Sequence record: NC_061444.1
Direction: 5' to 3' (one strand)
DNA: 64,000 bases
The notes under the pieces were generated by a model. The model ran no database searches and was not told where the DNA came from. It saw only the letters and a list, made by a program, of their open reading frames with translations. The translations under genes were made by a program, and so were the position numbers. Each line of letters begins with the position of its first letter. Position 1 is the first letter of the stretch. Positions 9,934-35,062 of the stretch are shown here, in pieces.

Positions 9934-10476
9934 ATGACGGAAAAGATTACGCAGTTGGCAAAGTGGTTTGATGCGGCGAAAGTCGCATTCAAGATGGGGA
10001 CAGTTAATCCAGACGGTGATGCTGCGTTGCTTCTGGCAATTCACAAACGTCTGATTAAAGAAGTCGAAGATGCTGGTGATGCAGAAACCAAAGCATTCGC
10101 TCAGACAAATCTGTCAGAGTTCATTTCGGATCTGCGCATAGAGCTGCGCATGTTCGACCTGATCTGCAGGCGCTTCAACACTGACCTGTACCCTCAGATC
10201 AAAATCGGCGATGACGTCAAAATCTATATCGCGCTCATGGCTCAAACGCCGGGCAGTGCTGTAATGGCAATGACGTACCTGTATCTTGCTCGCTGCTACA
10301 CGCTGCAAGACATGATCTTAAACTTCCTCCCGAACGGCTTCCCGGCCTCAGATGCTCTCGGTCTTACGTGGAGCATTCAGAAAGGGAACAGTGATGCGTT
10401 CACCGGAAATCTGGTGGACGATATCGAAACTGTAAATAGCCTGTACAATAAGATGTATAGCTCAGGAGAGAAGTAA
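9934..10476 (+). CDS. hypothetical protein (180 aa)
   Basis: SD gagga, long ORF in operon. Confidence 0.65.
   Translation: MTEKITQLAKWFDAAKVAFKMGTVNPDGDAALLLAIHKRLIKEVEDAGDAETKAFAQTNLSEFISDLRIELRMFDLICRRFNTDLYPQIKIGDDVKIYIALMAQTPGSAVMAMTYLYLARCYTLQDMILNFLPNGFPASDALGLTWSIQKGNSDAFTGNLVDDIETVNSLYNKMYSSGEK
10429..10438 (+). promoter_or_regulatory. putative phage promoter, CTGTAAA class
   Basis: ACTGTAAATA 37 nt before the macrodomain ATG. Confidence 0.5.
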
Positions 10477-11063
10477 TGGATTTGTCTGCAATCGGTTACG
10501 CTTCGAAACAGTTCCGAGTAATCCCCGTTGAGAAGGGAAATCTCGTGACTGATTTTATTCAAGGTAAGTTCCGCGTTATCGGTGTTGAGTGCAATGCCCG
10601 TGGTGCTTACGGTAGTCCTATCCAGCAGAGTATCGCACGGCGCTTCCCGGAAGTCATGCGCAAAGTCGAATCAGTTGACTACGAGCATGAACTGACTATC
10701 GGTAAGACTCATCTTATTCGTGTTGGTACTCAACACCGCCGCAATCTGTTTGTTGCTAACATGCACATTGCTCGCGGTTTCGGTCTGGGCCTCAATCGCA
10801 CTATGTCCGAAGGCCCGATCAACCGTTTCAGTGAGCAGCACCTGACGCGAGCGTTTGAACATCTGATTGAACAGTGTGATAAAGAGAACATCGCACTCGA
10901 CCGTCAGATCGCTATTCAGCGCTTCTATGGTGGACTCGGCGGAGTTTCGTGGGAAGAAGTATGTGTAGTCCTTGATGCTATCTGTGAAAAGCACAAGTTC
11001 AACATGTACGCGTACCTACCACGTAACTACAATTCTAACTACGTGCGTGGTAGCGCGAACTAA
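10476..11063 (+). CDS. macrodomain (ADP-ribose binding/hydrolase-like) protein
   Basis: KGNLV...VECNARGAYGSPIQQSIARRFP and IAIQRFYGGLGGVSWEEV resemble T4 Tk.4/Poa1-type macrodomains. Confidence 0.7.
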   Translation: MDLSAIGYASKQFRVIPVEKGNLVTDFIQGKFRVIGVECNARGAYGSPIQQSIARRFPEVMRKVESVDYEHELTIGKTHLIRVGTQHRRNLFVANMHIARGFGLGLNRTMSEGPINRFSEQHLTRAFEHLIEQCDKENIALDRQIAIQRFYGGLGGVSWEEVCVVLDAICEKHKFNMYAYLPRNYNSNYVRGSAN

Positions 11064-12228: not shown

Positions 12229-12999
12229 ATGAGCAACATTGATAATACAATGCCTGAGGGCAAGTGGGAGTTCAACGAGCCTGTTGCTGCTGTGTTTGAT
12301 AACATGCTGCAAAACTCAATCCCGTCGTATGGCCGTATGCGCGACTTGACCTATCGTCTGGGTCGTCAGTTCGTCACGCCCGGTACTGCTATCGTTGACC
12401 TCGGAGCTTCTCTGGGTCGTGCTATTGAGCCGTTCTGCAAAGAGTTCGGCGAGTACATCTACGTTCACGCTGCTGACCGTCCTGAGCCAGATCGTGAAAT
12501 CGGTAACATGTACTGCTGCTACGAAGTCGCTCCTGCGATGCTTGAACGCCTGCGTGAAAACGAAGTGCTGAAAGCGGCCAAAGCGAAAATCAGTAGCGAA
12601 TCGCTGGTGGACGTTGACACGTTCCGCTTCGACGAACAGGTTGAGTGCTCGCTCATTCTGTCTGTACTCACTCTCCAGTTCACGCCGATTGAACATCGTC
12701 AACACGTCCTTGAGAAAGTCTATGACTCTCTTGCAAAAGGCGGTGCGTTCATTCTCGTTGAGAAGGTTCTCGGTGACGACAACTTCCTCGACCGTCTGCT
12801 GGTGGACACGTACTATCACATGAAAGGCGACAACGGCTACACGCAAGAATCTATTGCATGTAAGCGTAAGTCACTCGAAGGTATTCTGGTGCCTGTCAAA
12901 GCTGCATGGAACGAAGAACTGCTGCGCAAAGCGGGCTTCAACCGTGTAGAATGTTTCTACCGCGATCTCAACTTCGCCGGATGGATCGCAATTAAGTAA
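12229..12999 (+). CDS. cmoA: CmoA-like carboxy-SAM synthase
   Basis: WEFNEPVAAVFDNMLQNSIPSY, VDLGASLG, TLQF, GGAFILVEK, KRKSLE and LNF align along the full length with bacterial CmoA; the KR Arg is kept. Confidence 0.88.
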   Translation: MSNIDNTMPEGKWEFNEPVAAVFDNMLQNSIPSYGRMRDLTYRLGRQFVTPGTAIVDLGASLGRAIEPFCKEFGEYIYVHAADRPEPDREIGNMYCCYEVAPAMLERLRENEVLKAAKAKISSESLVDVDTFRFDEQVECSLILSVLTLQFTPIEHRQHVLEKVYDSLAKGGAFILVEKVLGDDNFLDRLLVDTYYHMKGDNGYTQESIACKRKSLEGILVPVKAAWNEELLRKAGFNRVECFYRDLNFAGWIAIK

Positions 13000-13009
13000 G
13001 GGAAGTAGC

Positions 13010-14272
13010 ATGAAAGTAAACGGGCGTATCTTAGCAATCGTACCGCACAAGACTCTGGCTGATCGCACGAAGTCTGGTGTTGGTGCTTACATCGACGGAC
13101 TCGAAGCGTATGGCTTCTGCGACTTCATCACTGACGGTGAGAACAGTTCCGTAACCAAGAGCTTGTGGTTTAACTACGGTGACACCACGCTGAGTGATGG
13201 TTACAAAGTAGGGCACATTCAAAGTGAACTGCTTGCTGCTCTTGAGCGTCATCCGTATCGTGCAATCATTTGCAGCACATACGAAGCGATTGAAGCTGCT
13301 GTCGGTCTGGGCTTGCCAAAGATTATGCCCGTTTACTATCGTTCGCATAACAGCTTCCTGTTGACGCAAGATCTCAATGGTCTCGGTGCTGAGAAGATTC
13401 ACCGTGCTCTACTGCAAGCTGGCGTAACTGGTCTGCGTGTGTTAGCGAACTGTGATTCAACTGCAAACAATCTGGCATCACGTTATCCTGTTGCTGCGTC
13501 TGTCGCGTACAACTCGTTCAACGTGCCTGACTACAATCCACCAGCAAAGCGCAAGCCGACGCTGTTGATTATCTGTCGCTACGAAAAGGTTAAGCGCCCT
13601 GCGTTTGCTGCTCGTATCGCTGCTGCATCTGGTCTGCCTGTTCGTGTGATGACGGGCAGTGATCGCCAAGTTAAAAGCTGGCAGAAAGAATTGACCGATG
13701 CTGGTGTCAAAGACCATACAGTCGTTAGCGGTATCAGCGGCAAAGAGAAACTTGAGTTCATCGGTGCTTGTACCGTGGCTCTCTCCTGCGCTGAAATCGA
13801 ATCGTTCGCTAACGGTGTGCGTGAGTCTATCCCGTACTGCCCAACGTTCATCGTGCAAACATCGAAGTTCGACTGGGCGAAAGATTACACACGCTTCTGC
13901 TCTCTGGACAAACACATCCACGTTCGCACTGTTGACCGTGTGACAGAGCAGGAAGTCACTGAGCTGGGTAATGAGATTGCTTACTGGGCTACTACTCGCT
14001 ACCTGAACAATGCTCAACGTAAAGACTTGATGACCAAGTGGGTTGCTCAAGTCGATAAGGGCTGGGCTGACTTTATGAAGAATGCCGTTGTTGCTGATGA
14101 CGGCAAGCCCCTGAAAACTGACCTGTCGAAAGAACTCGAACAAAAAGGCGTAGTAGACTGGTCAGAAGTACCTGCGCTTATGCGTACTGTAAAAGCATTA
14201 CACAAATGCCATGCTCGTATGGGCCTGACATTCGATGGCACCAAAATCAAAACTAAAGGAAGAAAGAAATGA
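13010..14272 (+). CDS. GT-B fold glycosyltransferase (GT4-like)
   Basis: N-terminal SGVGAYI, ICRYEKVKRP, E-x7-E motif ESFANGVRE. Confidence 0.75.
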   Translation: MKVNGRILAIVPHKTLADRTKSGVGAYIDGLEAYGFCDFITDGENSSVTKSLWFNYGDTTLSDGYKVGHIQSELLAALERHPYRAIICSTYEAIEAAVGLGLPKIMPVYYRSHNSFLLTQDLNGLGAEKIHRALLQAGVTGLRVLANCDSTANNLASRYPVAASVAYNSFNVPDYNPPAKRKPTLLIICRYEKVKRPAFAARIAAASGLPVRVMTGSDRQVKSWQKELTDAGVKDHTVVSGISGKEKLEFIGACTVALSCAEIESFANGVRESIPYCPTFIVQTSKFDWAKDYTRFCSLDKHIHVRTVDRVTEQEVTELGNEIAYWATTRYLNNAQRKDLMTKWVAQVDKGWADFMKNAVVADDGKPLKTDLSKELEQKGVVDWSEVPALMRTVKALHKCHARMGLTFDGTKIKTKGRKK

Positions 14273-15303
14273 GCGTGATTGGTGATATCTATAACATTCC
14301 TCAACCGTATGCGATGTACTGCGGCAATGCCAAAACCAAAGCAATGGCAAAGATTACTGCCGGTATGGTTGAGTGGGCTCCTGAGAAGGTATGTTGTGTA
14401 GTCGAAGACGCTGAACGTTTGTTCGCTGACGTACCGTGTGTTGAAGTGCGCGATCTCGATAAGACCGACGCTGAAACTCTGGTTATCGGCTTTGCGCCAT
14501 TTGGCGGTCAGATTAACGACGACATTGATCGCGTTGTCTGCGAAGCATTAAAGCGCGGTCTGAACGTTGCTGCTGCTCTGCACGTCAAACTGGCAGACAA
14601 TCCTAAATACTTCGCGCTCGCTCGTGAGCACGGTGTATCACTGTATGACTTCCGCCATCACCCTGAGCAATATCCTCTGGGCACCGGTATTCGTCGTGAC
14701 GGTATTCGCGTTCTGACTGTTGGCACCGACTGCTCCTGCGGTAAGAAATTCACTGCGCTCGCTCTGACCAAGAAGCTGACCGAGATGAGTCAGAAAGCTG
14801 TGTTCTGTGCTACAGGCCAGACAGGCTTCTTGATTAGCGGTCGTGGCATCAACAACGACACTGTGGTTGCTGACTTCCTTGCTGGTGCTGCTGAGTGGCT
14901 TTCACCTGATGACAAAGACGCAATCTATTTGATTGAAGGTCAAGGCGCTATTCGTCACCCTGCGTATACTGGCGGCAGCATGAGTCTGATTGCTGGCTCG
15001 CAACCTGATGCGCTCGTTATGTGTCACACTGTTGGCCGTAACGTCATGATGGGCACTGAGCGCGAGATCAGTATCACGGACGAAATCTCTGCTAACCTTG
15101 CAGCGGCTGCGATGCACGACTGGTACCCTCGCGTTGTTGGTATCAGTATCAACTTCTGCGAGTCTGGTATGAACAAAGAACAGCGCAAGAAGTATCTGGC
15201 GACTATTGAGCGTAACATCGGCTACGTAGCGTTCGACCCGCAAGAAGGTGGCGAAGCATTTGACCGTGTTGCTACTACCATCGCGTTGCTGTCGCGCCCA
15301 TGA
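14269..15303 (+). CDS. DUF1611 family protein (DgcN-like)
   Basis: GFAPFGGQI, VLTVGTDCSCGKKFTA, ATGQTG, DFLAGAAE, IEGQGAIRHPAY, GSQPDALVMCH. Confidence 0.88.
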   Translation: MSVIGDIYNIPQPYAMYCGNAKTKAMAKITAGMVEWAPEKVCCVVEDAERLFADVPCVEVRDLDKTDAETLVIGFAPFGGQINDDIDRVVCEALKRGLNVAAALHVKLADNPKYFALAREHGVSLYDFRHHPEQYPLGTGIRRDGIRVLTVGTDCSCGKKFTALALTKKLTEMSQKAVFCATGQTGFLISGRGINNDTVVADFLAGAAEWLSPDDKDAIYLIEGQGAIRHPAYTGGSMSLIAGSQPDALVMCHTVGRNVMMGTEREISITDEISANLAAAAMHDWYPRVVGISINFCESGMNKEQRKKYLATIERNIGYVAFDPQEGGEAFDRVATTIALLSRP

Positions 15304-16235
15304 TAGTCCTAATCGACAACGCTGCGTTAGCGAGTAATGCAGCGTATTTAAAATCACTCGCACCGACCATGATTCCAGTTGTGAAAGGTAATTTCTATGG
15401 GCATGGTTTAGATTGCGTGGCAGCGTTCGCGTCTGACTTTGACGTGCTTGCAGTGCATAACGTCCGAGAGGCATTGACGCTGCGTGAGCTTGGACTTGAC
15501 CACACGCTGCTGATTCTCGGTGGTACTGACGCGCGTATGTGGAATATAGTTCCTGTATTGAATGCAGCGCAAGCCTCAACGTATGAAGGCCAGTATGCTG
15601 TGTTTGCTGATTGGGGCTGTCGTCGTATCAATGTCAGCCCTGGCCAACTTACCAGTCGCCCAGCTCTCGTTCTCATTCACTCTGAGGACTACCGTCAGCC
15701 TGTGTCTGCGCACACTGCTAACGAGATTGCTGTGCGTTACAACATGCCGCGCTCTCGATTGTCTGTAGGCTCAAGCATGAATGCGCTTACACCAGACGCG
15801 CCGAAGTTGATGCCGCGTGTTGGTATGGCACTTACCGGTTATAGCAGTGATGAAACTGTTAACGGTAATTTGATCGTAGCGAAGACAGTGCTTGCTCGCA
15901 TCTGCGATAAGCTGGATGCTGGTCGAGTATTTGGTTACGGTGCATTAGTGCCTAACAGCGCACACATGTTCCTGTATTCGATTGATGTGGGTTATTACGA
16001 TAACTTATATCAGTCAGAGAACAACACGCCTGTGCATTGCCCTACTGTGCCACACGCTAAGGTCACGTTGCTTACTGGCGTTGCGCGATCAATCAGCATG
16101 AACCATGCCTTCGTATTGTCAGATACTGAGCTACCGTTCGACTCTGAAATTGAATTGCTTGGACCGAACGTTCGCGCAGATTATCTGGCCAAACTTCACG
16201 GAACAACAACTGCGAATATTTTAAGGCTGGGTTAA
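15300..16235 (+). CDS. alr: alanine racemase-like PLP enzyme (fold type III)
   Basis: IPVVKGNFYGHG (PLP Lys), EALTLRELG, RVGMALTG, FGYG, VGYYD, ISMN; shorter than typical Alr. Confidence 0.8.
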   Translation: MIVLIDNAALASNAAYLKSLAPTMIPVVKGNFYGHGLDCVAAFASDFDVLAVHNVREALTLRELGLDHTLLILGGTDARMWNIVPVLNAAQASTYEGQYAVFADWGCRRINVSPGQLTSRPALVLIHSEDYRQPVSAHTANEIAVRYNMPRSRLSVGSSMNALTPDAPKLMPRVGMALTGYSSDETVNGNLIVAKTVLARICDKLDAGRVFGYGALVPNSAHMFLYSIDVGYYDNLYQSENNTPVHCPTVPHAKVTLLTGVARSISMNHAFVLSDTELPFDSEIELLGPNVRADYLAKLHGTTTANILRLG

Positions 16236-16237
16236 TC

Positions 16238-17107
16238 ATGGCTAAACACGTTTTGCGTAAGCTGTTTGAGCAGCACGTTAAGCAAGAGGTTAAAGCGGAC
16301 AAAGTTGCAGTGCTGCTGTCAAGCGGCCTTGATGGACTTGTCAGTGCTCTTGCTGCCCACGACTTAGGAAAGAAGGTACATGCCTTTACTTTCCAGATGG
16401 GTGACAACGAAAGTTTTGACAGCAAACACGCACGTAAAGTAGCAGAGAAGATGGGCTGGGAGTTCACGCTTGTGAAAGTTCCTACGTCCGACACTGCTAT
16501 CGCTCAGGGCTGGCGCACACTTCACGCCAAGTATCGCTGTATCAAAAAGCGTGACTACGAGTGTGCTTACCCTATGGTGTATTGCTACAAGGCAATCAAA
16601 GAAGCAGGTTACAAGTACGTTCTCAGCGGCCTTGTTGCTGACGCTTACTTCTGCTTTGCGCGTAATACCCACATCGCAAAAATCAGCGGCCCGCATAGCG
16701 TACTCGAAAAGTTCGACGAGTATCGCAAAGAGTATTGGGCGCCGTGGTTCAAGAACGGTAAGAAGTCTCTCGGCGTTGACGGCTATAATCCAAGTGGTAT
16801 GCTGCAACACGAAATGCTGTGCGACACTTTCGGCCTGACTCACGTTAACCCGTGGCTGTTGAAAAAAGTCCATGACTACTTCATCGGTCGTTCGTGGCAA
16901 GAACTAAATCAACCCAAGCAGAAAATGCCAATAACAGAAGCCTGGGCTGATCACATCGCTGTGGTAGGGCATCGTCCTCACCGTGGCTATCAAACAGAAG
17001 CTGGAGTACCTGCGTACTTCGAACGCTTACTGGATAATCCTGAGATCAACTTCAACGGTCGCAAGCGTGTTATGGACCTTGCGCGTGATTGGTCAACGAG
17101 GACTTAA
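16238..17107 (+). CDS. asparagine synthase C-terminal-domain-like ATP-dependent amide ligase (no glutaminase domain)
   Basis: PP-loop VLLSSGLDG, VLSGLVADAYF (cf. SGEGADELF), NPWL (cf. PFLD). Confidence 0.75.
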   Translation: MAKHVLRKLFEQHVKQEVKADKVAVLLSSGLDGLVSALAAHDLGKKVHAFTFQMGDNESFDSKHARKVAEKMGWEFTLVKVPTSDTAIAQGWRTLHAKYRCIKKRDYECAYPMVYCYKAIKEAGYKYVLSGLVADAYFCFARNTHIAKISGPHSVLEKFDEYRKEYWAPWFKNGKKSLGVDGYNPSGMLQHEMLCDTFGLTHVNPWLLKKVHDYFIGRSWQELNQPKQKMPITEAWADHIAVVGHRPHRGYQTEAGVPAYFERLLDNPEINFNGRKRVMDLARDWSTRT

Positions 17108-17108
17108 T

Positions 17109-17729
17109 ATGTTAGTACACATCATTGACGGAAGCGTAGGCGGTAACTATGTATTCCATAATCTGCAAGAGGCTGGTATCAACGCGCGTGTTCATGCTCC
17201 TAGTGATCCACGTCGCCGCGCAGTAGCAGCAACCTATCCTTCGCTGTCTATGGGATTTACTCCCGAAGAGATTGAGAAGCATATCGGTAATGTGCTTGGC
17301 ACGTATCGCGGTCTGTTCTTGATTAGCAGCTATGTTGGTTCGCTGGTGGCTCGCAGTATGATTGACCAGTGTGGTCAGAGTCATAACATCATCTACTGCG
17401 ATGATCTCAAGTGCGGGTCTACGCCTGTCGTTGCTTCCTCGATTTCTGTAAATGTCTATCAGAAGCAACGACAACTCGGACGCATTGCAGGTCGAATCAA
17501 ACACTTCGACTTCGACCATGAGTTCATTGTAGCTGACAAGGCTGTGCGTTTTGCAGCAGGGTCAGAATTTGATGAGCATGGTGCGCGTGAAGAACTGGAC
17601 GACACGCCCAAGTTCTTATCGAGTCCGTCAATGATTGTTGCTGCACACAAACTCGGTGTGAAGCGCAACGTGTATCACAACTACGCTGGTCTGGTGCAAG
17701 AGTTCCTTGAAAAGTGCCAGCAGCAATAA
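17109..17729 (+). CDS. hypothetical protein, degenerate Glu/Asp racemase (MurI)-like
   Basis: N-terminal IIDGSVGG resembles MurI VIDSGVGG; LISSYVGSLVA sits where IACNTASA would be; ATG 1 nt after the upstream stop. Confidence 0.45.
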   Translation: MLVHIIDGSVGGNYVFHNLQEAGINARVHAPSDPRRRAVAATYPSLSMGFTPEEIEKHIGNVLGTYRGLFLISSYVGSLVARSMIDQCGQSHNIIYCDDLKCGSTPVVASSISVNVYQKQRQLGRIAGRIKHFDFDHEFIVADKAVRFAAGSEFDEHGAREELDDTPKFLSSPSMIVAAHKLGVKRNVYHNYAGLVQEFLEKCQQQ

Positions 17730-18012: not shown

Positions 18013-18468
18013 ATGAATCTTTTCTCTATTTTAAAACAGCAAGTGAAGAAAGCGCTGTCTACCGAAGCGAACCACGAACCAGAAATTCGCGCTTTGTTTG
18101 ACTGGCGTTACTCAGTTGAAATCAAAGGTCAGATGTATATCGTCGGCAAGACAGGAGCAAACACCTGCTTCTATATCGAGCCGGGAACGTCTGAACCTAT
18201 CGCCTGTTACCCCGATGCGTTACTGGACAAGATCGACCAGTGGGGTTCAGGCAAGTACGTGTCGTATGCGATCTACTTCAAACGCTTCGAAAGCCCTGTT
18301 GCTGAGAACATCAAAAGTCTCGAAAAGGTAATGACAGGTAAACCGAAGACGTTTAAGAAAGGTTACTTCATCTGTGGCGTTACGCCGAAAGGCAAGCGCG
18401 TCAAGCTCTATCGTCTTCAACAGGGACTGAGCGGAATGCAGTGGGTAGCAGTGGAACCTAAAAAGTAA
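18013..18468 (+). CDS. hypothetical protein (151 aa)
   Basis: SD gagga. Confidence 0.65.
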   Translation: MNLFSILKQQVKKALSTEANHEPEIRALFDWRYSVEIKGQMYIVGKTGANTCFYIEPGTSEPIACYPDALLDKIDQWGSGKYVSYAIYFKRFESPVAENIKSLEKVMTGKPKTFKKGYFICGVTPKGKRVKLYRLQQGLSGMQWVAVEPKK

Positions 18469-20437: not shown

Positions 20438-21280
20438 ATGACAGTAATCAGCCCCATTCGTTATCAGGGCAATAAGCGTAGCCTTATCCCTCTTATTCTT
20501 GAAAACACACCTGATGTGAAAGACTGCCCGCGTATGGTCGATGTGTTTGGCGGTAGTGCCACCGTGTGCGCGAACATGCCTCAGAAGTTTCGCGTCTACA
20601 ACGAGCTTAGTCCTCAGGTGTATGAGATCGTTAAGATGCTTGTCGAGCAAGACCCGAAGAAAACATTGGGTCAAGTCAAGCGTCTGGTAAAGCACTGGTG
20701 CCTGACAAACAGCAACGAAGCGAACTATGACGCGTTTCGAACTGTCGTCCAGAAGAAGCGTACTCCCATACTTCACTACGTTGCGCACAGACACGCACAC
20801 TCGAACATGCTGCGCTTTAACCAGCAGGGTGTGTACAACGTAGGCTTCGGCGATCGTGGTCTGATTGGAAAGTTCGAGGAGCTTGAGCATGAGCTTACGA
20901 CATTCCACCAGCACATGCAGGGTGTTCACCTAACGAACATGAAGTACGGTAAGTTGTTGGGTAGACTCAGCAATCAACTGGATTGCAATACGTTCTGCTA
21001 CTTCGACCCGCCGTATCTGGCAAGTGGCGCGATGCAGTACGGCAAGTGGACTGAATCTAACGAACGTAACCTGCTTGCTACGCTTGAACAACTCAATCGC
21101 TTAGGCGTACCGTGGATGTTGAGCAACGTTACAGAGCACAGGCATTTCTCGAACGACCTGTTAAAGCGTTGGCTAAAGAAACACGCGACGACCGTGCTCT
21201 ACCCGAACAAAAGCTATGCGATGAACAACGGCCAGAGTGGCTCGCATGGTACTGTTGAAATTCTGGCAATGAACTACTGA
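20438..21280 (+). CDS. dam: Dam-like (D12 class) DNA adenine methyltransferase
   Basis: SPIRYQGNK, DVFGGSATV, DPPY, WMLSN; target sequence not determinable. Confidence 0.88.
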   Translation: MTVISPIRYQGNKRSLIPLILENTPDVKDCPRMVDVFGGSATVCANMPQKFRVYNELSPQVYEIVKMLVEQDPKKTLGQVKRLVKHWCLTNSNEANYDAFRTVVQKKRTPILHYVAHRHAHSNMLRFNQQGVYNVGFGDRGLIGKFEELEHELTTFHQHMQGVHLTNMKYGKLLGRLSNQLDCNTFCYFDPPYLASGAMQYGKWTESNERNLLATLEQLNRLGVPWMLSNVTEHRHFSNDLLKRWLKKHATTVLYPNKSYAMNNGQSGSHGTVEILAMNY

Positions 21281-23984: not shown

Positions 23985-24375
23985 CGGCGCGTCTGACGAT
24001 GAAGTTCGTAAGTATTACGAGCAGATTCACAAGGACGCAGAAGCAATCATGCAGCAGGTGTGGGCGCTTCGTGGTTGGACTATTCGCTGGGAGTGGCACA
24101 ACGGCATTTGCGATGACTGTGAATTTATTTTCGATGAAACAGGCAAATGCCGTGGCACTAAGTCTGATGCCATACCTCAGCAGGTGGGGATAGCTGACCG
24201 CATCGACGCGCTAAAGCTGTCTGTTTCGCACACCAAGAAATCTGTAAAGATAACTAACAAACATGCTGAAAAGCCAGTTGAAGGAAAAGGCCGTAATGTG
24301 CGCCTTGCTTATCTCGACTGGTTGCTCAGTGTTGAAAAGCAGAAAGCTGAGGAGAGAAAGTGCGCTGCAACTTAA
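23965..24375 (+). CDS. hypothetical protein
   Basis: ATG 23965 with ggag SD. Confidence 0.6.
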   Translation: MYHQLSDGASDDEVRKYYEQIHKDAEAIMQQVWALRGWTIRWEWHNGICDDCEFIFDETGKCRGTKSDAIPQQVGIADRIDALKLSVSHTKKSVKITNKHAEKPVEGKGRNVRLAYLDWLLSVEKQKAEERKCAAT

Positions 24376-24881
24376 CTGAACTACCAATCAAGCTCGAACA
24401 GGCCGAGTTTATTATGGCAAGCGTCTTTGCGCTCGCTGGTGCTTCTAAATCGAAACGCCGTGCGACTGCTGCGATGCTGGTGCACTTTCACAAAGGCTTC
24501 CCCACTATTATCAGTAGTGGCGTGAACGGTACGATGCCTGGTGAGAGCAACGTCATGGAGAACGCTGACCTGACGCTCTCCCTTGACACTGTTATTCACG
24601 CAGAAGCGAACTGCCTGAATCGCATGGAAGAGTACAACATGTGGTCGGACGATCAGGACATTTTGTTCTGCACCGATTCGCCGTGTCCAAACTGTCTGGC
24701 GTATCTTGAAGCGGAAGGCGTTAAGACGATTGTGTACGCGCGAGAGTATCGCCTGACCGATCATCTGGATGCGTCTGATATCAAGATGTTCTGTCTCGAT
24801 ATGGACAGCGTTATTCAGCGTATGCAACACAGCATCGACCGCAGCAAAGAAGTGATTGCAACAACCCCAGCGTCTAATTAA
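24360..24881 (+). CDS. dCMP deaminase-like zinc deaminase
   Basis: SGVNGT, HAEANC, SPCPNC, IVYAREY. Confidence 0.88.
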   Translation: MRCNLTELPIKLEQAEFIMASVFALAGASKSKRRATAAMLVHFHKGFPTIISSGVNGTMPGESNVMENADLTLSLDTVIHAEANCLNRMEEYNMWSDDQDILFCTDSPCPNCLAYLEAEGVKTIVYAREYRLTDHLDASDIKMFCLDMDSVIQRMQHSIDRSKEVIATTPASN

Positions 24882-32226: not shown

Positions 32227-32931
32227 ATGGCAAAAACTGCTACCAAAACAAAGGACGGAAAAAAGAAAGGCGAGTTGAAGTTTGATCTGAAAAAACTCAA
32301 TTCAGTCTCTCAGCTCAAGGGCGCAGAGTACAACCCGCGCTTCATTACTGACAGTCGCTTGAAAGCTCTCGAAGGTTCTCTCGGGAGTTTCGGTGATCTG
32401 TCTGGTATCGTGTTCAACAACAACATCAAGTCTGGTGTGTTGATCTCAGGCCACCAGCGTCTGAAATCAATCGACGGTTGGAAAACTCGCATCGAGATTC
32501 AGCCGACGACTGACAAGCACGGTACTATCGGTCTGGGCTACATTCATGCAACGCATCCGAAGAAAGCTGATCGTGTTATCAGCATTCCTCTGCGTGTCGT
32601 GAACTGGACTGATAAGAAAGCTGAGTACGCAGCGAACATCGCAGCGAACGCCCACGGCGGTGAGTTCGATAACAAGAAGCTCGCCAAGCTGGTTGAGAAA
32701 CTCGATCTGAATACGATCAAGCCTCAGCTGCTGGGTCTCGACCCGCTTGAGATTCGTGGTCTGCAAGCCAAGATCAAGATTCAGGCGAACGTCGAAGATA
32801 CGAAACGTGCTGGCAAGACTACTGGCCAGATGAACGGCAGCACCGGTAAGTTTAATGAGTACAACCCTGATGATGTGGGTGACACTCTGAACTGCACCTG
32901 CCCGCGTTGTGGATTTAAGTTCGAGGGATAA
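32227..32931 (+). CDS. ParB/Srx-like domain protein with C-terminal zinc ribbon
   Basis: YNPR, SLGSFG, LISGHQR, ANAHGGEFD, CTCPRCGFKF; start re-called. Confidence 0.8.
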   Translation: MAKTATKTKDGKKKGELKFDLKKLNSVSQLKGAEYNPRFITDSRLKALEGSLGSFGDLSGIVFNNNIKSGVLISGHQRLKSIDGWKTRIEIQPTTDKHGTIGLGYIHATHPKKADRVISIPLRVVNWTDKKAEYAANIAANAHGGEFDNKKLAKLVEKLDLNTIKPQLLGLDPLEIRGLQAKIKIQANVEDTKRAGKTTGQMNGSTGKFNEYNPDDVGDTLNCTCPRCGFKFEG

Positions 32932-32932
32932 T

Positions 32933-35062
32933 ATGATCATCAAGCCGCCAACCATGAAGGAAATCAACAAGCTGGCTAAACCCTGGCGTGGTATGAGTTT
33001 CTTCGCAGGTTGCGGTGGGTCTTCGACCGGTCACAAGATGGCCGGTATCGACATTCTGTTGAGCAACGAGTTTATTGACTCTGCGCGTGAGTCGTATGAA
33101 GCAAACCACCCGACAACCAAAGTGCTGCCTCATGATATCCGTCGCTTAGACCCAAGCAAGCTGTTGCGCTACTGCGGTCTTGCTAAGGGTGAGCTGGATT
33201 TGCTTGATGGTAGTCCTCCGTGCTTTACCGAAGACACAATCATCCACACTGCTGACGGCATGAAGTTCATTTCTGATATGCACGTCAACGATCTGGCAAT
33301 GACGAGCGTTGGTGAATACTTTCCTGTGTACGACACTATGGTTCGTCCGTATGTCGGTACGATGCACAAGATTGAAACGATGCTCGGTAGCAACAAAGCA
33401 ACGCCAGAGCACCCGTTCTTTGTTCGTCGCTCTCAGGCAGACGGTAGCTACTCTGAGCCGTTCTGGTGTGATGCGAAAGACGTGCAAGAAGGTGACTTGC
33501 TCTGTACGCCGCGCACTACCCCTGACATGGGGATTGACGTGTATCAGGCTCAGATTGATCAGTTGCCTAAGTTAGTAGCGGACTGGGTGACTTACCCTGA
33601 GTTCTGGTGGATGATTGGTCACTGGTGTGATCGTGGCACAATCGAAACAGTTAACGGTGTTGACGTCATCTGCTTCGAGTCGCACTCAAGCCTTGAGAAC
33701 GCGATGATCGAGCAGGCGTTTGATGCGCTTAAAATCAGTAGCCTGAATCGTATCGACACGACAACGGCGCAGCGCAAAACATTCCGCACTGTTATCGAAG
33801 CAGAGCTGGTGCAGTTCCTGCGTCGATTCGTCAGTCAGGAGCAGAACAAGTTTTCTCGTCGTCTGCCTGCAATCGTGTTCCATTTGTCAAACGAGTTGAA
33901 GCAACAATTCATTCTCGGTTGTGCGGGGCATGACTACGTGACTGCTATGGGCACAAGCCTTGCTATCACATCTGATAGTCGCCGCTTCCTGATTGAGCTG
34001 AACTACCTGTGTGCGTCTGCTTTCAATCGTCCGCTGTTTGACGGTCTTATCTGGGCAGACGTTAACTTCGGTAGTGCGTTAACGCCGCGTGAGCGTAACA
34101 GTTCACGAGCGCATATCGGCTTCCTGTTCCTGCAGGATGAAGCGCTGTTCATGCACGAGTTCTCCGATGAAGACCCGCATCTCTGGGTTGAAGTGATTGA
34201 GAACCTCGCGTATCAGGCGACCTGTGACGTGTATAACTTCTCTGTGCAGACAGACGAGACATACGTTGCAAATAGCATGGTCGTTCACAACTGCAAAGGC
34301 TTCTCTACTGCTGGTGTGAAAGAAGAAGGCTGGGGCAAAGAAGTTAAATACAGCGACAACAAGTATCAGCAGGTTGATGACCTGTTCGATCAGTATTGCC
34401 GTATGTTGCAAGGCATGGAGCCAAAAGTGTTCACTGCGGAAAACGTCAGTGGCCTAATCAAGGGTACCTCTAAAGGGTACTTTGTCGAAATCATGAAGCA
34501 CTTCGACAGATTAGGTTATTATGTTCGTGCTCCGATGTTGAATGCTTGCTGGCTTGGCGTACCGCAATCGCGTGAGCGTATCATCTTCATGGGTGTGCGT
34601 AAAGACGTTGCCCACGCACTCGGCTATAAGTCTGCTCAGACCGCTGTGCCTGATGTTATCCCGTGCGAGACGCAAGCGTTTCTCGGTGATGCGTTACCGC
34701 ACATCATGCGATACAAAACAACGCAGCGTGACCTGATCAAATATCTGCCTGCCGTTAACGGTCCGATGCCTACGATTACTGCTGCTGATGCGATTGCGTA
34801 TGAGACTGCGCGATTCTCGTCTGCTGGCTTTATCGAAGACAACAAAGGTCATCGCCGTAAGCTGACCATCGACGAACTCAAAGTTATCTCTGGACTGCCG
34901 TCTGACTATAAGCTGATGGGCGAGTTTGAAGAACAATGGGAACGTCTTGGTCGTATCTGTGTGCCAGCAATGACACACGCTGCATCTAAGGCTTTCATCG
35001 AGCACATTCTTCTGCCGTATGCGAAGAAGCGTAAGAAGAAGCCCGGCGATATCTTTAAGTAA
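32933..35062 (+). CDS. C5 cytosine methyltransferase-fold enzyme with intein; candidate cytosine carboxymethyltransferase (CmoX-like)
   Basis: Motif I FAGCGG, IV GSPP/C, VI AENV, VIII QSRERI; motif X reads LGRICVP instead of GNAVP. Confidence 0.85.
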   Translation: MIIKPPTMKEINKLAKPWRGMSFFAGCGGSSTGHKMAGIDILLSNEFIDSARESYEANHPTTKVLPHDIRRLDPSKLLRYCGLAKGELDLLDGSPPCFTEDTIIHTADGMKFISDMHVNDLAMTSVGEYFPVYDTMVRPYVGTMHKIETMLGSNKATPEHPFFVRRSQADGSYSEPFWCDAKDVQEGDLLCTPRTTPDMGIDVYQAQIDQLPKLVADWVTYPEFWWMIGHWCDRGTIETVNGVDVICFESHSSLENAMIEQAFDALKISSLNRIDTTTAQRKTFRTVIEAELVQFLRRFVSQEQNKFSRRLPAIVFHLSNELKQQFILGCAGHDYVTAMGTSLAITSDSRRFLIELNYLCASAFNRPLFDGLIWADVNFGSALTPRERNSSRAHIGFLFLQDEALFMHEFSDEDPHLWVEVIENLAYQATCDVYNFSVQTDETYVANSMVVHNCKGFSTAGVKEEGWGKEVKYSDNKYQQVDDLFDQYCRMLQGMEPKVFTAENVSGLIKGTSKGYFVEIMKHFDRLGYYVRAPMLNACWLGVPQSRERIIFMGVRKDVAHALGYKSAQTAVPDVIPCETQAFLGDALPHIMRYKTTQRDLIKYLPAVNGPMPTITAADAIAYETARFSSAGFIEDNKGHRRKLTIDELKVISGLPSDYKLMGEFEEQWERLGRICVPAMTHAASKAFIEHILLPYAKKRKKKPGDIFK
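33221..34291 (+). mobile_element. 357-aa intein with degenerate LAGLIDADG region
   Basis: Starts CFTEDT, ATPEHPF, ends YNFSV...VHN followed by Cys; removal restores SPPCKGFS. Confidence 0.92.

Follow-up and report, generated by a model that had tools for sequence, protein, structure and literature searches.

A predicted CmoX-type DNA cytosine carboxymethyltransferase with an intein at its catalytic cysteine in Erwinia jumbo phage pEa_SNUABM_32

Introduction

The window analyzed here, a stretch of 64,000 nucleotides from record NC_061444.1, is 100% identical to bases 1-64000 of Erwinia phage pEa_SNUABM_32, an Alexandravirus jumbo phage with a genome of 265.9 kb. Its gene gp051 (32933-35062, + strand), which carries the RefSeq label "hypothetical protein," very probably encodes a DNA cytosine carboxymethyltransferase that depends on carboxy-S-adenosylmethionine (Cx-SAM), a reading to which we give a probability of roughly 0.85 from sequence comparison. 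Such enzymes form the CmoX class of DNA cytosine C5-carboxymethyltransferases, first described in December 2025 (Yang et al., 2025; PMC12783734), and since this family has already been published, gp051 is a member of a known family and not a new class of enzyme. A preliminary description of this DNA, made from its letters alone, had proposed a natural CmoX-type enzyme, and the proposal gains support from the best match of gp051 to a solved CmoX structure, from an arginine in the diagnostic column of motif X, and from the presence in the same genome of CmoA and a CmoY-like ligase.

An interrupted C5-methyltransferase of the CmoX family

The gene and its parts are as follows.

32933-35062, + strand: CmoX precursor gene (gp051), an open reading frame of 709 amino acids (aa) plus stop, with a C5-methyltransferase fold and an inserted intein.
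32933-33220, + strand: N-extein, aa 1-96, with motif I (FFAGCGG), NEF and D68, ending in GSPP; aligned to SpCmoX and to the intein-free PaBG orthologue.
33221-34291, + strand: predicted class-1 intein of 357 aa, precursor aa 97-453; boundaries from the PaBG orthologue, with matches to Pfam Intein_splicing and NCBIfam intein_Cterm.
34292-35059, + strand: C-extein, aa 454-709, with the +1 Cys, motifs IV (CKGFS), VI (AENV), VIII (QSRER), IX and X; aligned to SpCmoX and the PaBG orthologue and by HMMER.
34952-34954, + strand: CGT codon of Arg674 (R317 after splicing), read from the sequence and from HMMER alignments to 8YF3, HaeIII and HhaI.

A ParB-like gene ends a single base before the ATG of gp051, which is preceded by GAGGG, and because the homologues share the same first Met, the start is placed at ATG 32933 instead of at an upstream GTG. 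The C5 methyltransferase that had been assigned to 32933-35062 is borne out by the + strand reading frame and by Pfam, in which DNA_methylase (5.8e-38) matches in two pieces flanking an Intein_splicing domain. Motif IX is RKLTIDE, and motif X reads ERLGRICVP with its Arg codon exactly where it had been placed, while in-silico removal of the 357-aa intein returns the spliced protein of 352 aa that had been given. The statement that the catalytic motifs are intact holds for motifs I, VI, and VIII; motif IV is broken in the precursor and becomes whole only after splicing.

The best match of gp051 among solved structures is 8YF3 (single-sequence E=6.9e-53; 1.9e-108 for a profile built from 40 family sequences), which is SpCmoX of Synechococcus phage S-B43 with Cx-SAM bound (Yang et al., 2025; PMC12783734). 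M.MpeI (4dkj), by comparison, is a distant match (E=3.9e-4 with the single sequence). In the HMMER alignment the family consensus eRlGRavpP is aligned with ERVGR(350)MVPP of SpCmoX, KMIGNAVPV of M.HaeIII and KQFGN(304)SVVI of M.HhaI, which sets Arg674 of gp051 in the column of SpCmoX R350, M.HhaI N304 and the M.HaeIII Asn; the alignment to M.HhaI and CmoX that the preliminary description had suggested as a check thus puts the Arg in the motif X Asn column. The crystal structure shows R350 touching the carboxymethyl group of Cx-SAM; wild-type SpCmoX uses Cx-SAM as its sole cofactor, and the R350N mutant is inactive (PMC12783734). The remaining SpCmoX contacts F25, E47, F48, D69, and C98 are all conserved, as F24, E46, F47, D68, and C454 of gp051, the first four being kept in 8/8 phage homologues aligned, and the SPPC of SpCmoX (S95-P96-P97-C98) is matched by GSPP plus Cys454, which would be formed on splicing. 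In an AlphaFold2 (AF2) model of the whole precursor the exteins reach a predicted local distance difference test score (pLDDT) of about 90, and a Foldseek search with this model again returned 8yf3 first (E=1e-16, target-normalized template modeling score 0.77, alignment spanning the intein), as against a score of about 0.5 for HhaI.

An intein at the catalytic cysteine

Across the insertion site, the PaBG orthologue without an intein reads EGSPPCKSFSTSG (GSPPCKSFS), and the gp051 precursor reads DGSPP/CFTEDT...VVHN/CKGFSTAG, where the slashes mark the junctions. Since the PaBG orthologue is uninterrupted at GSPP/C, the intein is bounded at aa 97 and 453, and motif IV (GSPP/CKGFS) is split exactly before the catalytic Cys. 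The Cys that follows GSPP in the precursor is therefore Cys1 of the intein, and the true nucleophile is the +1 residue, Cys454 (34292-34294). The Pfam Intein_splicing match scores 39.6 bits against a gathering cutoff of 35.8, and the residues present include Cys1 (C97), the block B TPEH (T157-x-x-H160, intein T61/H64), H452-N453, and the +1 C454. Judged from this arrangement, the enzyme would be unable to act until the intein is removed. The central ~200 aa of the intein hold, by eye and in comparison with the intein of cluster L029, degenerate LAGLIDADG-like motifs, the first of them without its Asp (IGHWCDRG and LGCAGHDY, vs GRFLGDGW and GYVSADG in L029); no endonuclease family was matched by this region in Pfam or PDB sequence searches, and its AF2 pLDDT is below 50.

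All the orthologues examined from jumbo phages of Erwinia, Dickeya, and Yersinia, those of AD1, Alexandra, Y3, Yoloswag, and fHe-Yen9-02 among them, have an intein at the identical site and precursors 692-711 aa long; among these the inteins fall to ~34-38% identity, against 70-90% for the exteins. The same GSPP/C site is filled by unrelated-looking inteins in the CmoX homologues L029, P0006, and P0038, and more than 100 close homologues (up to 70% identity) have no intein. Such an intein on the active-site Cys appears to be unreported: the literature searched reports neither an intein nor DNA modification in Alexandravirus, Y3, or PaBG, and the text supplements of Yang et al. (2025), the one paper on CmoX that these searches yielded, make no mention of Erwinia, Dickeya, or inteins.

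The degenerate endonuclease-like center, with no family match and low pLDDT, could be taken as a sign that the gene is dead or conditionally silent, with an intein that no longer splices and a reading frame that persists because the loss is recent. The splicing residues Cys1, TxxH, HN, and Cys+1 are, however, intact, and loss of the homing endonuclease leaves intein splicing unimpaired. Furthermore, the frame is open across Alexandravirus, Sasquatchvirus, Yoloswagvirus, and a Yersinia phage, with C-extein identities of 70-100%, and such conservation across diverged phages is unexpected for a dead gene, so that we regard this explanation as extremely unlikely.

The motif X arginine and its association with CmoA

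In the 123 closest sequences, comprising the gp051 query, PaBG, SpCmoX, and 120 database homologues, the motif X column holds R in 117, N in 5, and M in 1. A tree of the same sequences shows R throughout a 113-member clade, with gp051 inside an all-R subclade, and N in at least three separate tip positions. The Asn and Met variants (P0060/L016, P0067, P0091, P0110, P0074, and P0023) are nested at the tips and account for at least three independent changes, possibly back to the state of an ordinary methyltransferase.

These repeated Asn revertants within the Arg clade suggest a low barrier between the two states, and the engineered M.MpeI N374K shows that a basic residue can widen cofactor use without switching it. 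Both would fit an enzyme that accepts S-adenosylmethionine (SAM) as well as Cx-SAM and produces a mixture of 5-methylcytosine (5mC) and 5-carboxymethylcytosine (5cxmC) derivatives set by the supply of Cx-SAM. We consider a dual cofactor very unlikely for gp051, given that natural SpCmoX did not use SAM and that gp051 is identical to it at every cofactor contact listed above.

The residue in motif X was also compared with the presence of a CmoA homologue. The Asn-variant contigs P0110 and P0060 are at most 6 kb long, too short to prove that CmoA is absent, and complete phage genomes were used instead, searched by tblastn. All five CmoA-positive genomes (pEa_SNUABM_32, PaBG, S-B43, S-CRM01, and Streptomyces phage TurkishDelight) read GR, and Arg was found in 0/6 of the CmoA-negative ones (FpV9 GM, BMBtp14 GM, LoVEphage GM, a P2-like phage GN, CL131 GN, and Melnitz-2 GL), in a comparison that is small and phylogenetically non-independent. 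The pattern agrees with a large-scale survey in which the contigs of 5,615 candidates with SPPC and R350 yielded 4,257 CmoA genes (Yang et al., 2025; PMC12783734).

The replacement of the motif X Asn by Met or Leu in phages without CmoA is an observation in its own right, located at L021:1204-2271 (FpV9), L022:1210-2250 (BMBtp14), L024:1171-2277 (LoVEphage), and L025:1204-2421 (Melnitz-2). The Met form reads G-M-S-V-P-P, and the C5-methyltransferase homologue of BMBtp14 (L022) has a ParB-like neighbor too.

Partner genes in a split locus

Three further genes of the window correspond to the partners of CmoX.

12229-12999, + strand: cmoA (gp016), carboxy-SAM synthase homologue; matches E. coli CmoA (PDB 4GEK) with E=1.5e-29 over residues 11-256, nearly full length.
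16238-17107, + strand: CmoY-like AMP-forming amide ligase (gp020), 289 aa; Pfam Asn_synthase 6.9e-16 and homology to SpCmoY.
32227-32931, + strand: ParB-like gene, by RefSeq annotation and PHROG 620 (ParB-like, 3.1e-32).

The ligase gp020 has the ATP-binding domain of asparagine synthetase without the glutaminase domain, is 34% identical to SpCmoY over nearly its full length (E=3e-54), and belongs to the same-strand gene block as cmoA, which it follows at a distance of 3.2 kb. The cmoA gene itself is 19.9 kb upstream of cmoX, not 16 kb as the preliminary description had it, a figure that fits the end (17107) of the cmoA-linked ligase gene. The ParB-like gene is 44% identical to the one adjoining the CmoX of PaBG, though Pfam ParBc (PF02195) gave no match to it even at E up to 5; ParBc neighbors of CmoX have been reported (Yang et al., 2025; PMC12783734).

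In PaBG the order of genes is ParB-like, CmoX, CmoA, a 150-aa protein, and an Asn-synthase-like ligase, and ParB, CmoX, CmoA, and ligase are contiguous in 16 non-Erwinia IMG/VR contigs. Given these compact clusters, the Erwinia-type phages hold in divided form a system that is normally compact, and this split locus appears to be unreported. A compact arrangement is also seen in TurkishDelight (L019:3138-6566), which joins two ParB-like genes to CmoX (GR), a ligase of 466 aa, and CmoA. The ligase carries a glutamine amidotransferase domain and fits the second ligase class of the CmoX paper, which is predicted to use glutamine-derived ammonia.

The partner genes also bear on the simplest alternative, an ordinary SAM-dependent, Dcm-like C5-methyltransferase making 5mC, in which the Arg would be incidental and CmoA would serve tRNA modification or SAM depletion. 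Its fold and all catalytic motifs are indeed those of a C5-methyltransferase, databases call its relatives "DNA (cytosine-5-)-methyltransferase," and cmoA is non-adjacent in pEa_SNUABM_32. On the other hand, SpCmoX, the closest characterized relative with the same Arg, takes Cx-SAM only, the Arg tracks CmoA in the phage genomes, and the orthologue adjoins CmoA in PaBG and the 16 IMG/VR contigs. The genome moreover encodes a ligase like SpCmoY, which acts on 5cxmC in DNA, and no CmoB homologue was noticed in the cluster. Taken together, this makes plain 5mC formation by gp051 very unlikely.

Several points nevertheless weigh against a Cx-SAM-dependent carboxymethyltransferase. First, the Arg by itself does not prove which cofactor is used: the R350N mutant of SpCmoX is dead rather than SAM-using, which means that other cofactor determinants exist. 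Second, the target-recognition region between motifs VIII and IX could not be aligned with SpCmoX and has no close relative that is characterized, and the GC specificity of the latter therefore cannot be assumed for gp051. Third, gp016 scores 141.7 bits against TIGR00740, under the cutoff of 193.3; the validated SpCmoA (115.6 bits) and PaBG CmoA (130.5 bits) also fall below, so that this cutoff does not discriminate in the case of phage CmoAs. Fourth, with cmoA 20 kb away, the linkage is one of co-occurrence in a genome and not of adjacency. Finally, the splicing competence of the intein is predicted from its residues, and the literature yielded no biochemical or mass-spectrometric data for pEa_SNUABM_32 or any Alexandravirus.

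Accessory genes between cmoA and the ligase

Three genes stand between cmoA and the ligase, and a fourth, conserved one lies beyond it.

13010-14272, + strand: gp017, 420 aa, probable GT-B-type glycosyltransferase-like protein; weak Glyco_transf_4 match, homologue P0126.
14269-15303, + strand: gp018, DUF1611/DgcN-like; Pfam DUF1611 5.5e-51, PDB 7XRJ 4.8e-62.
15300-16235, + strand: gp019, alanine-racemase-like protein of fold-type III, pyridoxal phosphate-dependent type; Pfam Ala_racemase_N 8e-15, NCBIfam alr 1.3e-14, PDB alanine racemases ~1e-8.
18013-18468, + strand: gp023, 151 aa, cluster-associated conserved protein; 34% identity to PaBG gp307.

Counterparts of the first three recur in CmoX clusters elsewhere. 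The gp017 homologue P0126 is 40% identical and carries Glycos_transf_1, and further gp017 homologues sit inside the CmoX/CmoA/CmoY clusters L027, L029, and L030. A DUF1611 gene is embedded in clusters L027, L029/L030, L050, and L063; gp018 itself reaches 306.9 bits against the NCBIfam DgcN model, under its cutoff of 480. A gp019 homologue of 39% identity is found in L027. The L029/L030 cluster as a whole comprises ParB, CmoX with an intein, GT-like, DUF1611, CmoY, CmoA, and gp023-like genes, and that of L027 comprises CmoA, GT-like, DUF1611, Alr-like, CmoY, DAHP_synth_1, and gp023-like genes. The DAHP_synth_1 gene (L027:14162-15025; AroG/KdsA type, 287 aa, Pfam 2.4e-42) could supply CmoA with more shikimate/prephenate, or its product could be a sugar acid. 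IMG/VR pattern scans for relatives of DUF1611 and gp017 used overly specific patterns and retrieved Erwinia-type phages alone.

Among the Erwinia-type phages, all three genes occur between cmoA and the ligase in the pEa_SNUABM_32 subgroup only; AD1 and Alexandra have just the DUF1611 gene of the three, and Y3 and Yoloswag have another ligase class together with an annotated "oxygenase." This other class, ~25% identical to gp020, directly follows cmoA at L010:2938-4733 (Y3), L012:2442-4246 (Yoloswag), L011:2356-3237 (SNUABM_5), and L013:2138-3133 (fHe-Yen9-02). Such ligase differences among syntenic jumbo phages suggest module swapping and differing final modifications within one phage group.

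The gp023 family (~150 aa, 57 representatives, motif W..VGKGGxNTxFY..ER..CYP) includes PaBG gp307, which lies between the CmoA and the ligase of that phage, and members at L007:4572-5024, L027:14991-15434, and L030:4499-4978. In IMG/VR, CmoA and CmoY are found within 10 kb of gp023 relatives in 32/32 loci. The AF2 model of gp023 is confident (pLDDT 92.8), with the PaBG orthologue as its sole structural neighbor; gp023 gave no Pfam match, no PDB sequence match, and no PDB structural neighbor. On the short contig L016, a gp023 relative follows an Asn-variant methyltransferase and no CmoA is seen, and the family may thus belong to the ParB-methyltransferase pair rather than to Cx-SAM chemistry. 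We also considered as a shared fifth component gp021 (17109-17729) and PaBG gp305, both of which follow the ligase, and dropped the pair at an hhalign probability of 0.1%.

DUF1611 proteins, glycosyltransferases, and racemases are not mentioned in the CmoX paper (PMC12783734). The recurrence of these accessory genes in CmoX clusters appears to be unreported and points to hypermodification beyond 5cxmC-glycine. More tentatively, and at somewhat short of an even chance, they may be parts of a larger undescribed pathway that elaborates the carboxymethyl handle by the ligase and the GT-B-like, DUF1611/DgcN-like acyltransferase-type, and racemase-like proteins, with gp023 as a core component of ParB-CmoX systems and with activity conditional on splicing. 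The product of such a pathway may differ from 5cxmC and from 5cxmC-glycine; an amide of a D-amino acid bearing an additional acyl or glycosyl group would be one example.

The early-gene block of the window holds three further genes (20438-21280, 24360-24881, and 10476-11063, all on the + strand), namely a D12-class (Dam-like) N6-adenine methyltransferase, a dCMP deaminase, and a counterpart of AD1 and Y3 genes that are annotated as O-acetyl-ADP-ribose deacetylase (macro domain).

A plausible pathway and its implications

A scenario in four steps can be drawn from these comparisons. The 357-aa intein, given its intact residues, would first splice itself out, joining GSPP to CKGFS and thereby completing motif IV with the +1 Cys as catalytic nucleophile. 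The phage CmoA, by homology to SpCmoA and EcCmoA, would convert SAM and host prephenate into Cx-SAM. The spliced enzyme, as modeled on the structure and assays of SpCmoX, would then flip out the target cytosine, Cys454 would attack C6, and Arg674, in the position of the motif X Asn, would hold the carboxymethyl group of Cx-SAM for its transfer to C5, leaving 5cxmC in the phage DNA. In the last step the gp020 ligase is expected from homology to adenylate the carboxylate and then amidate it, the amine probably being an alpha-amino acid, and gene linkage suggests that the GT-B-like, DUF1611/DgcN-like, and racemase-like enzymes may supply or decorate the amide group. The biological role is likely to be the shielding of phage DNA from host restriction, by analogy with what has been proposed for S-B43.

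If the carboxymethyltransferase reading of gp051 is true, jumbo phages of Erwinia and Dickeya belonging to Alexandravirus, Sasquatchvirus, and Yoloswagvirus would carry DNA derived from 5cxmC. Some such phages are components of fire-blight biocontrol cocktails. The modification would affect phage sequencing (nanopore and bisulfite), restriction digestion, cloning, and evasion of host restriction. The variable modules of syntenic phages, in which a SpCmoY-like ligase with DUF1611 occurs with or without GT-like and racemase-like genes, or a second ligase class occurs with an "oxygenase," offer a natural series for finding amide hypermodifications, new examples of which were named as an open question in the CmoX paper (PMC12783734). 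The intein is also a natural example of how a self-splicing element can sit precisely at the nucleophile of an enzyme that modifies DNA.

Comparison with known systems

The system of S-B43 is the nearest that has been characterized. SpCmoX and gp051 share the C5-methyltransferase fold, the SPPC motif, the Arg in place of the motif X Asn and identical F/E/F/D contacts to Cx-SAM, and both phages encode CmoA and an asparagine synthetase-like ligase without a glutaminase domain. They differ in that gp051 is split by the 357-aa intein at its catalytic Cys, that cmoA and cmoY lie 15-20 kb from cmoX in the window but adjacent to it in S-B43, that a ParB-like gene abuts cmoX in the window, and that GT-B-like, DUF1611, and racemase-like genes are inserted there between cmoA and cmoY.

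Among isolated phages, PaBG has the closest orthologue without an intein, gp309, annotated as "DNA cytosine methylase," for which no experimental characterization was found in the literature searched. It is 47% identical over the C-extein and has the GR motif, and PaBG likewise has a ParB-like neighbor, CmoA, a gp023-like protein, and an Asn-synthase-like ligase. Unlike the window, PaBG has no intein, holds its genes in one compact cluster, and uses a ligase of a different sequence class (25% identity).

Among other C5 enzymes, M.MpeI N374K resembles gp051 in having a basic residue for the motif X Asn, in using Cx-SAM and in making 5cxmC, but it is an engineered and CpG-specific enzyme with Lys instead of Arg, and a distant relative. 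M.HhaI, M.HaeIII, and E. coli Dcm are built from the same ten motifs and work by the same Cys addition, whereas they retain the motif X Asn (GNS, GNA), form 5mC, and are not partnered with a CmoA. As for the intein, phage-encoded inteins have been described in the N6/N4 DNA methylases DNMT-1 and DNMT-2 of mycobacteriophages (Kelley et al., 2016; PMC5050341). These, too, reside at conserved insertion sites in phage DNA-modifying enzymes, but the extein of gp051 is of the C5/CmoX type, and its +1 Cys doubles as the catalytic nucleophile.

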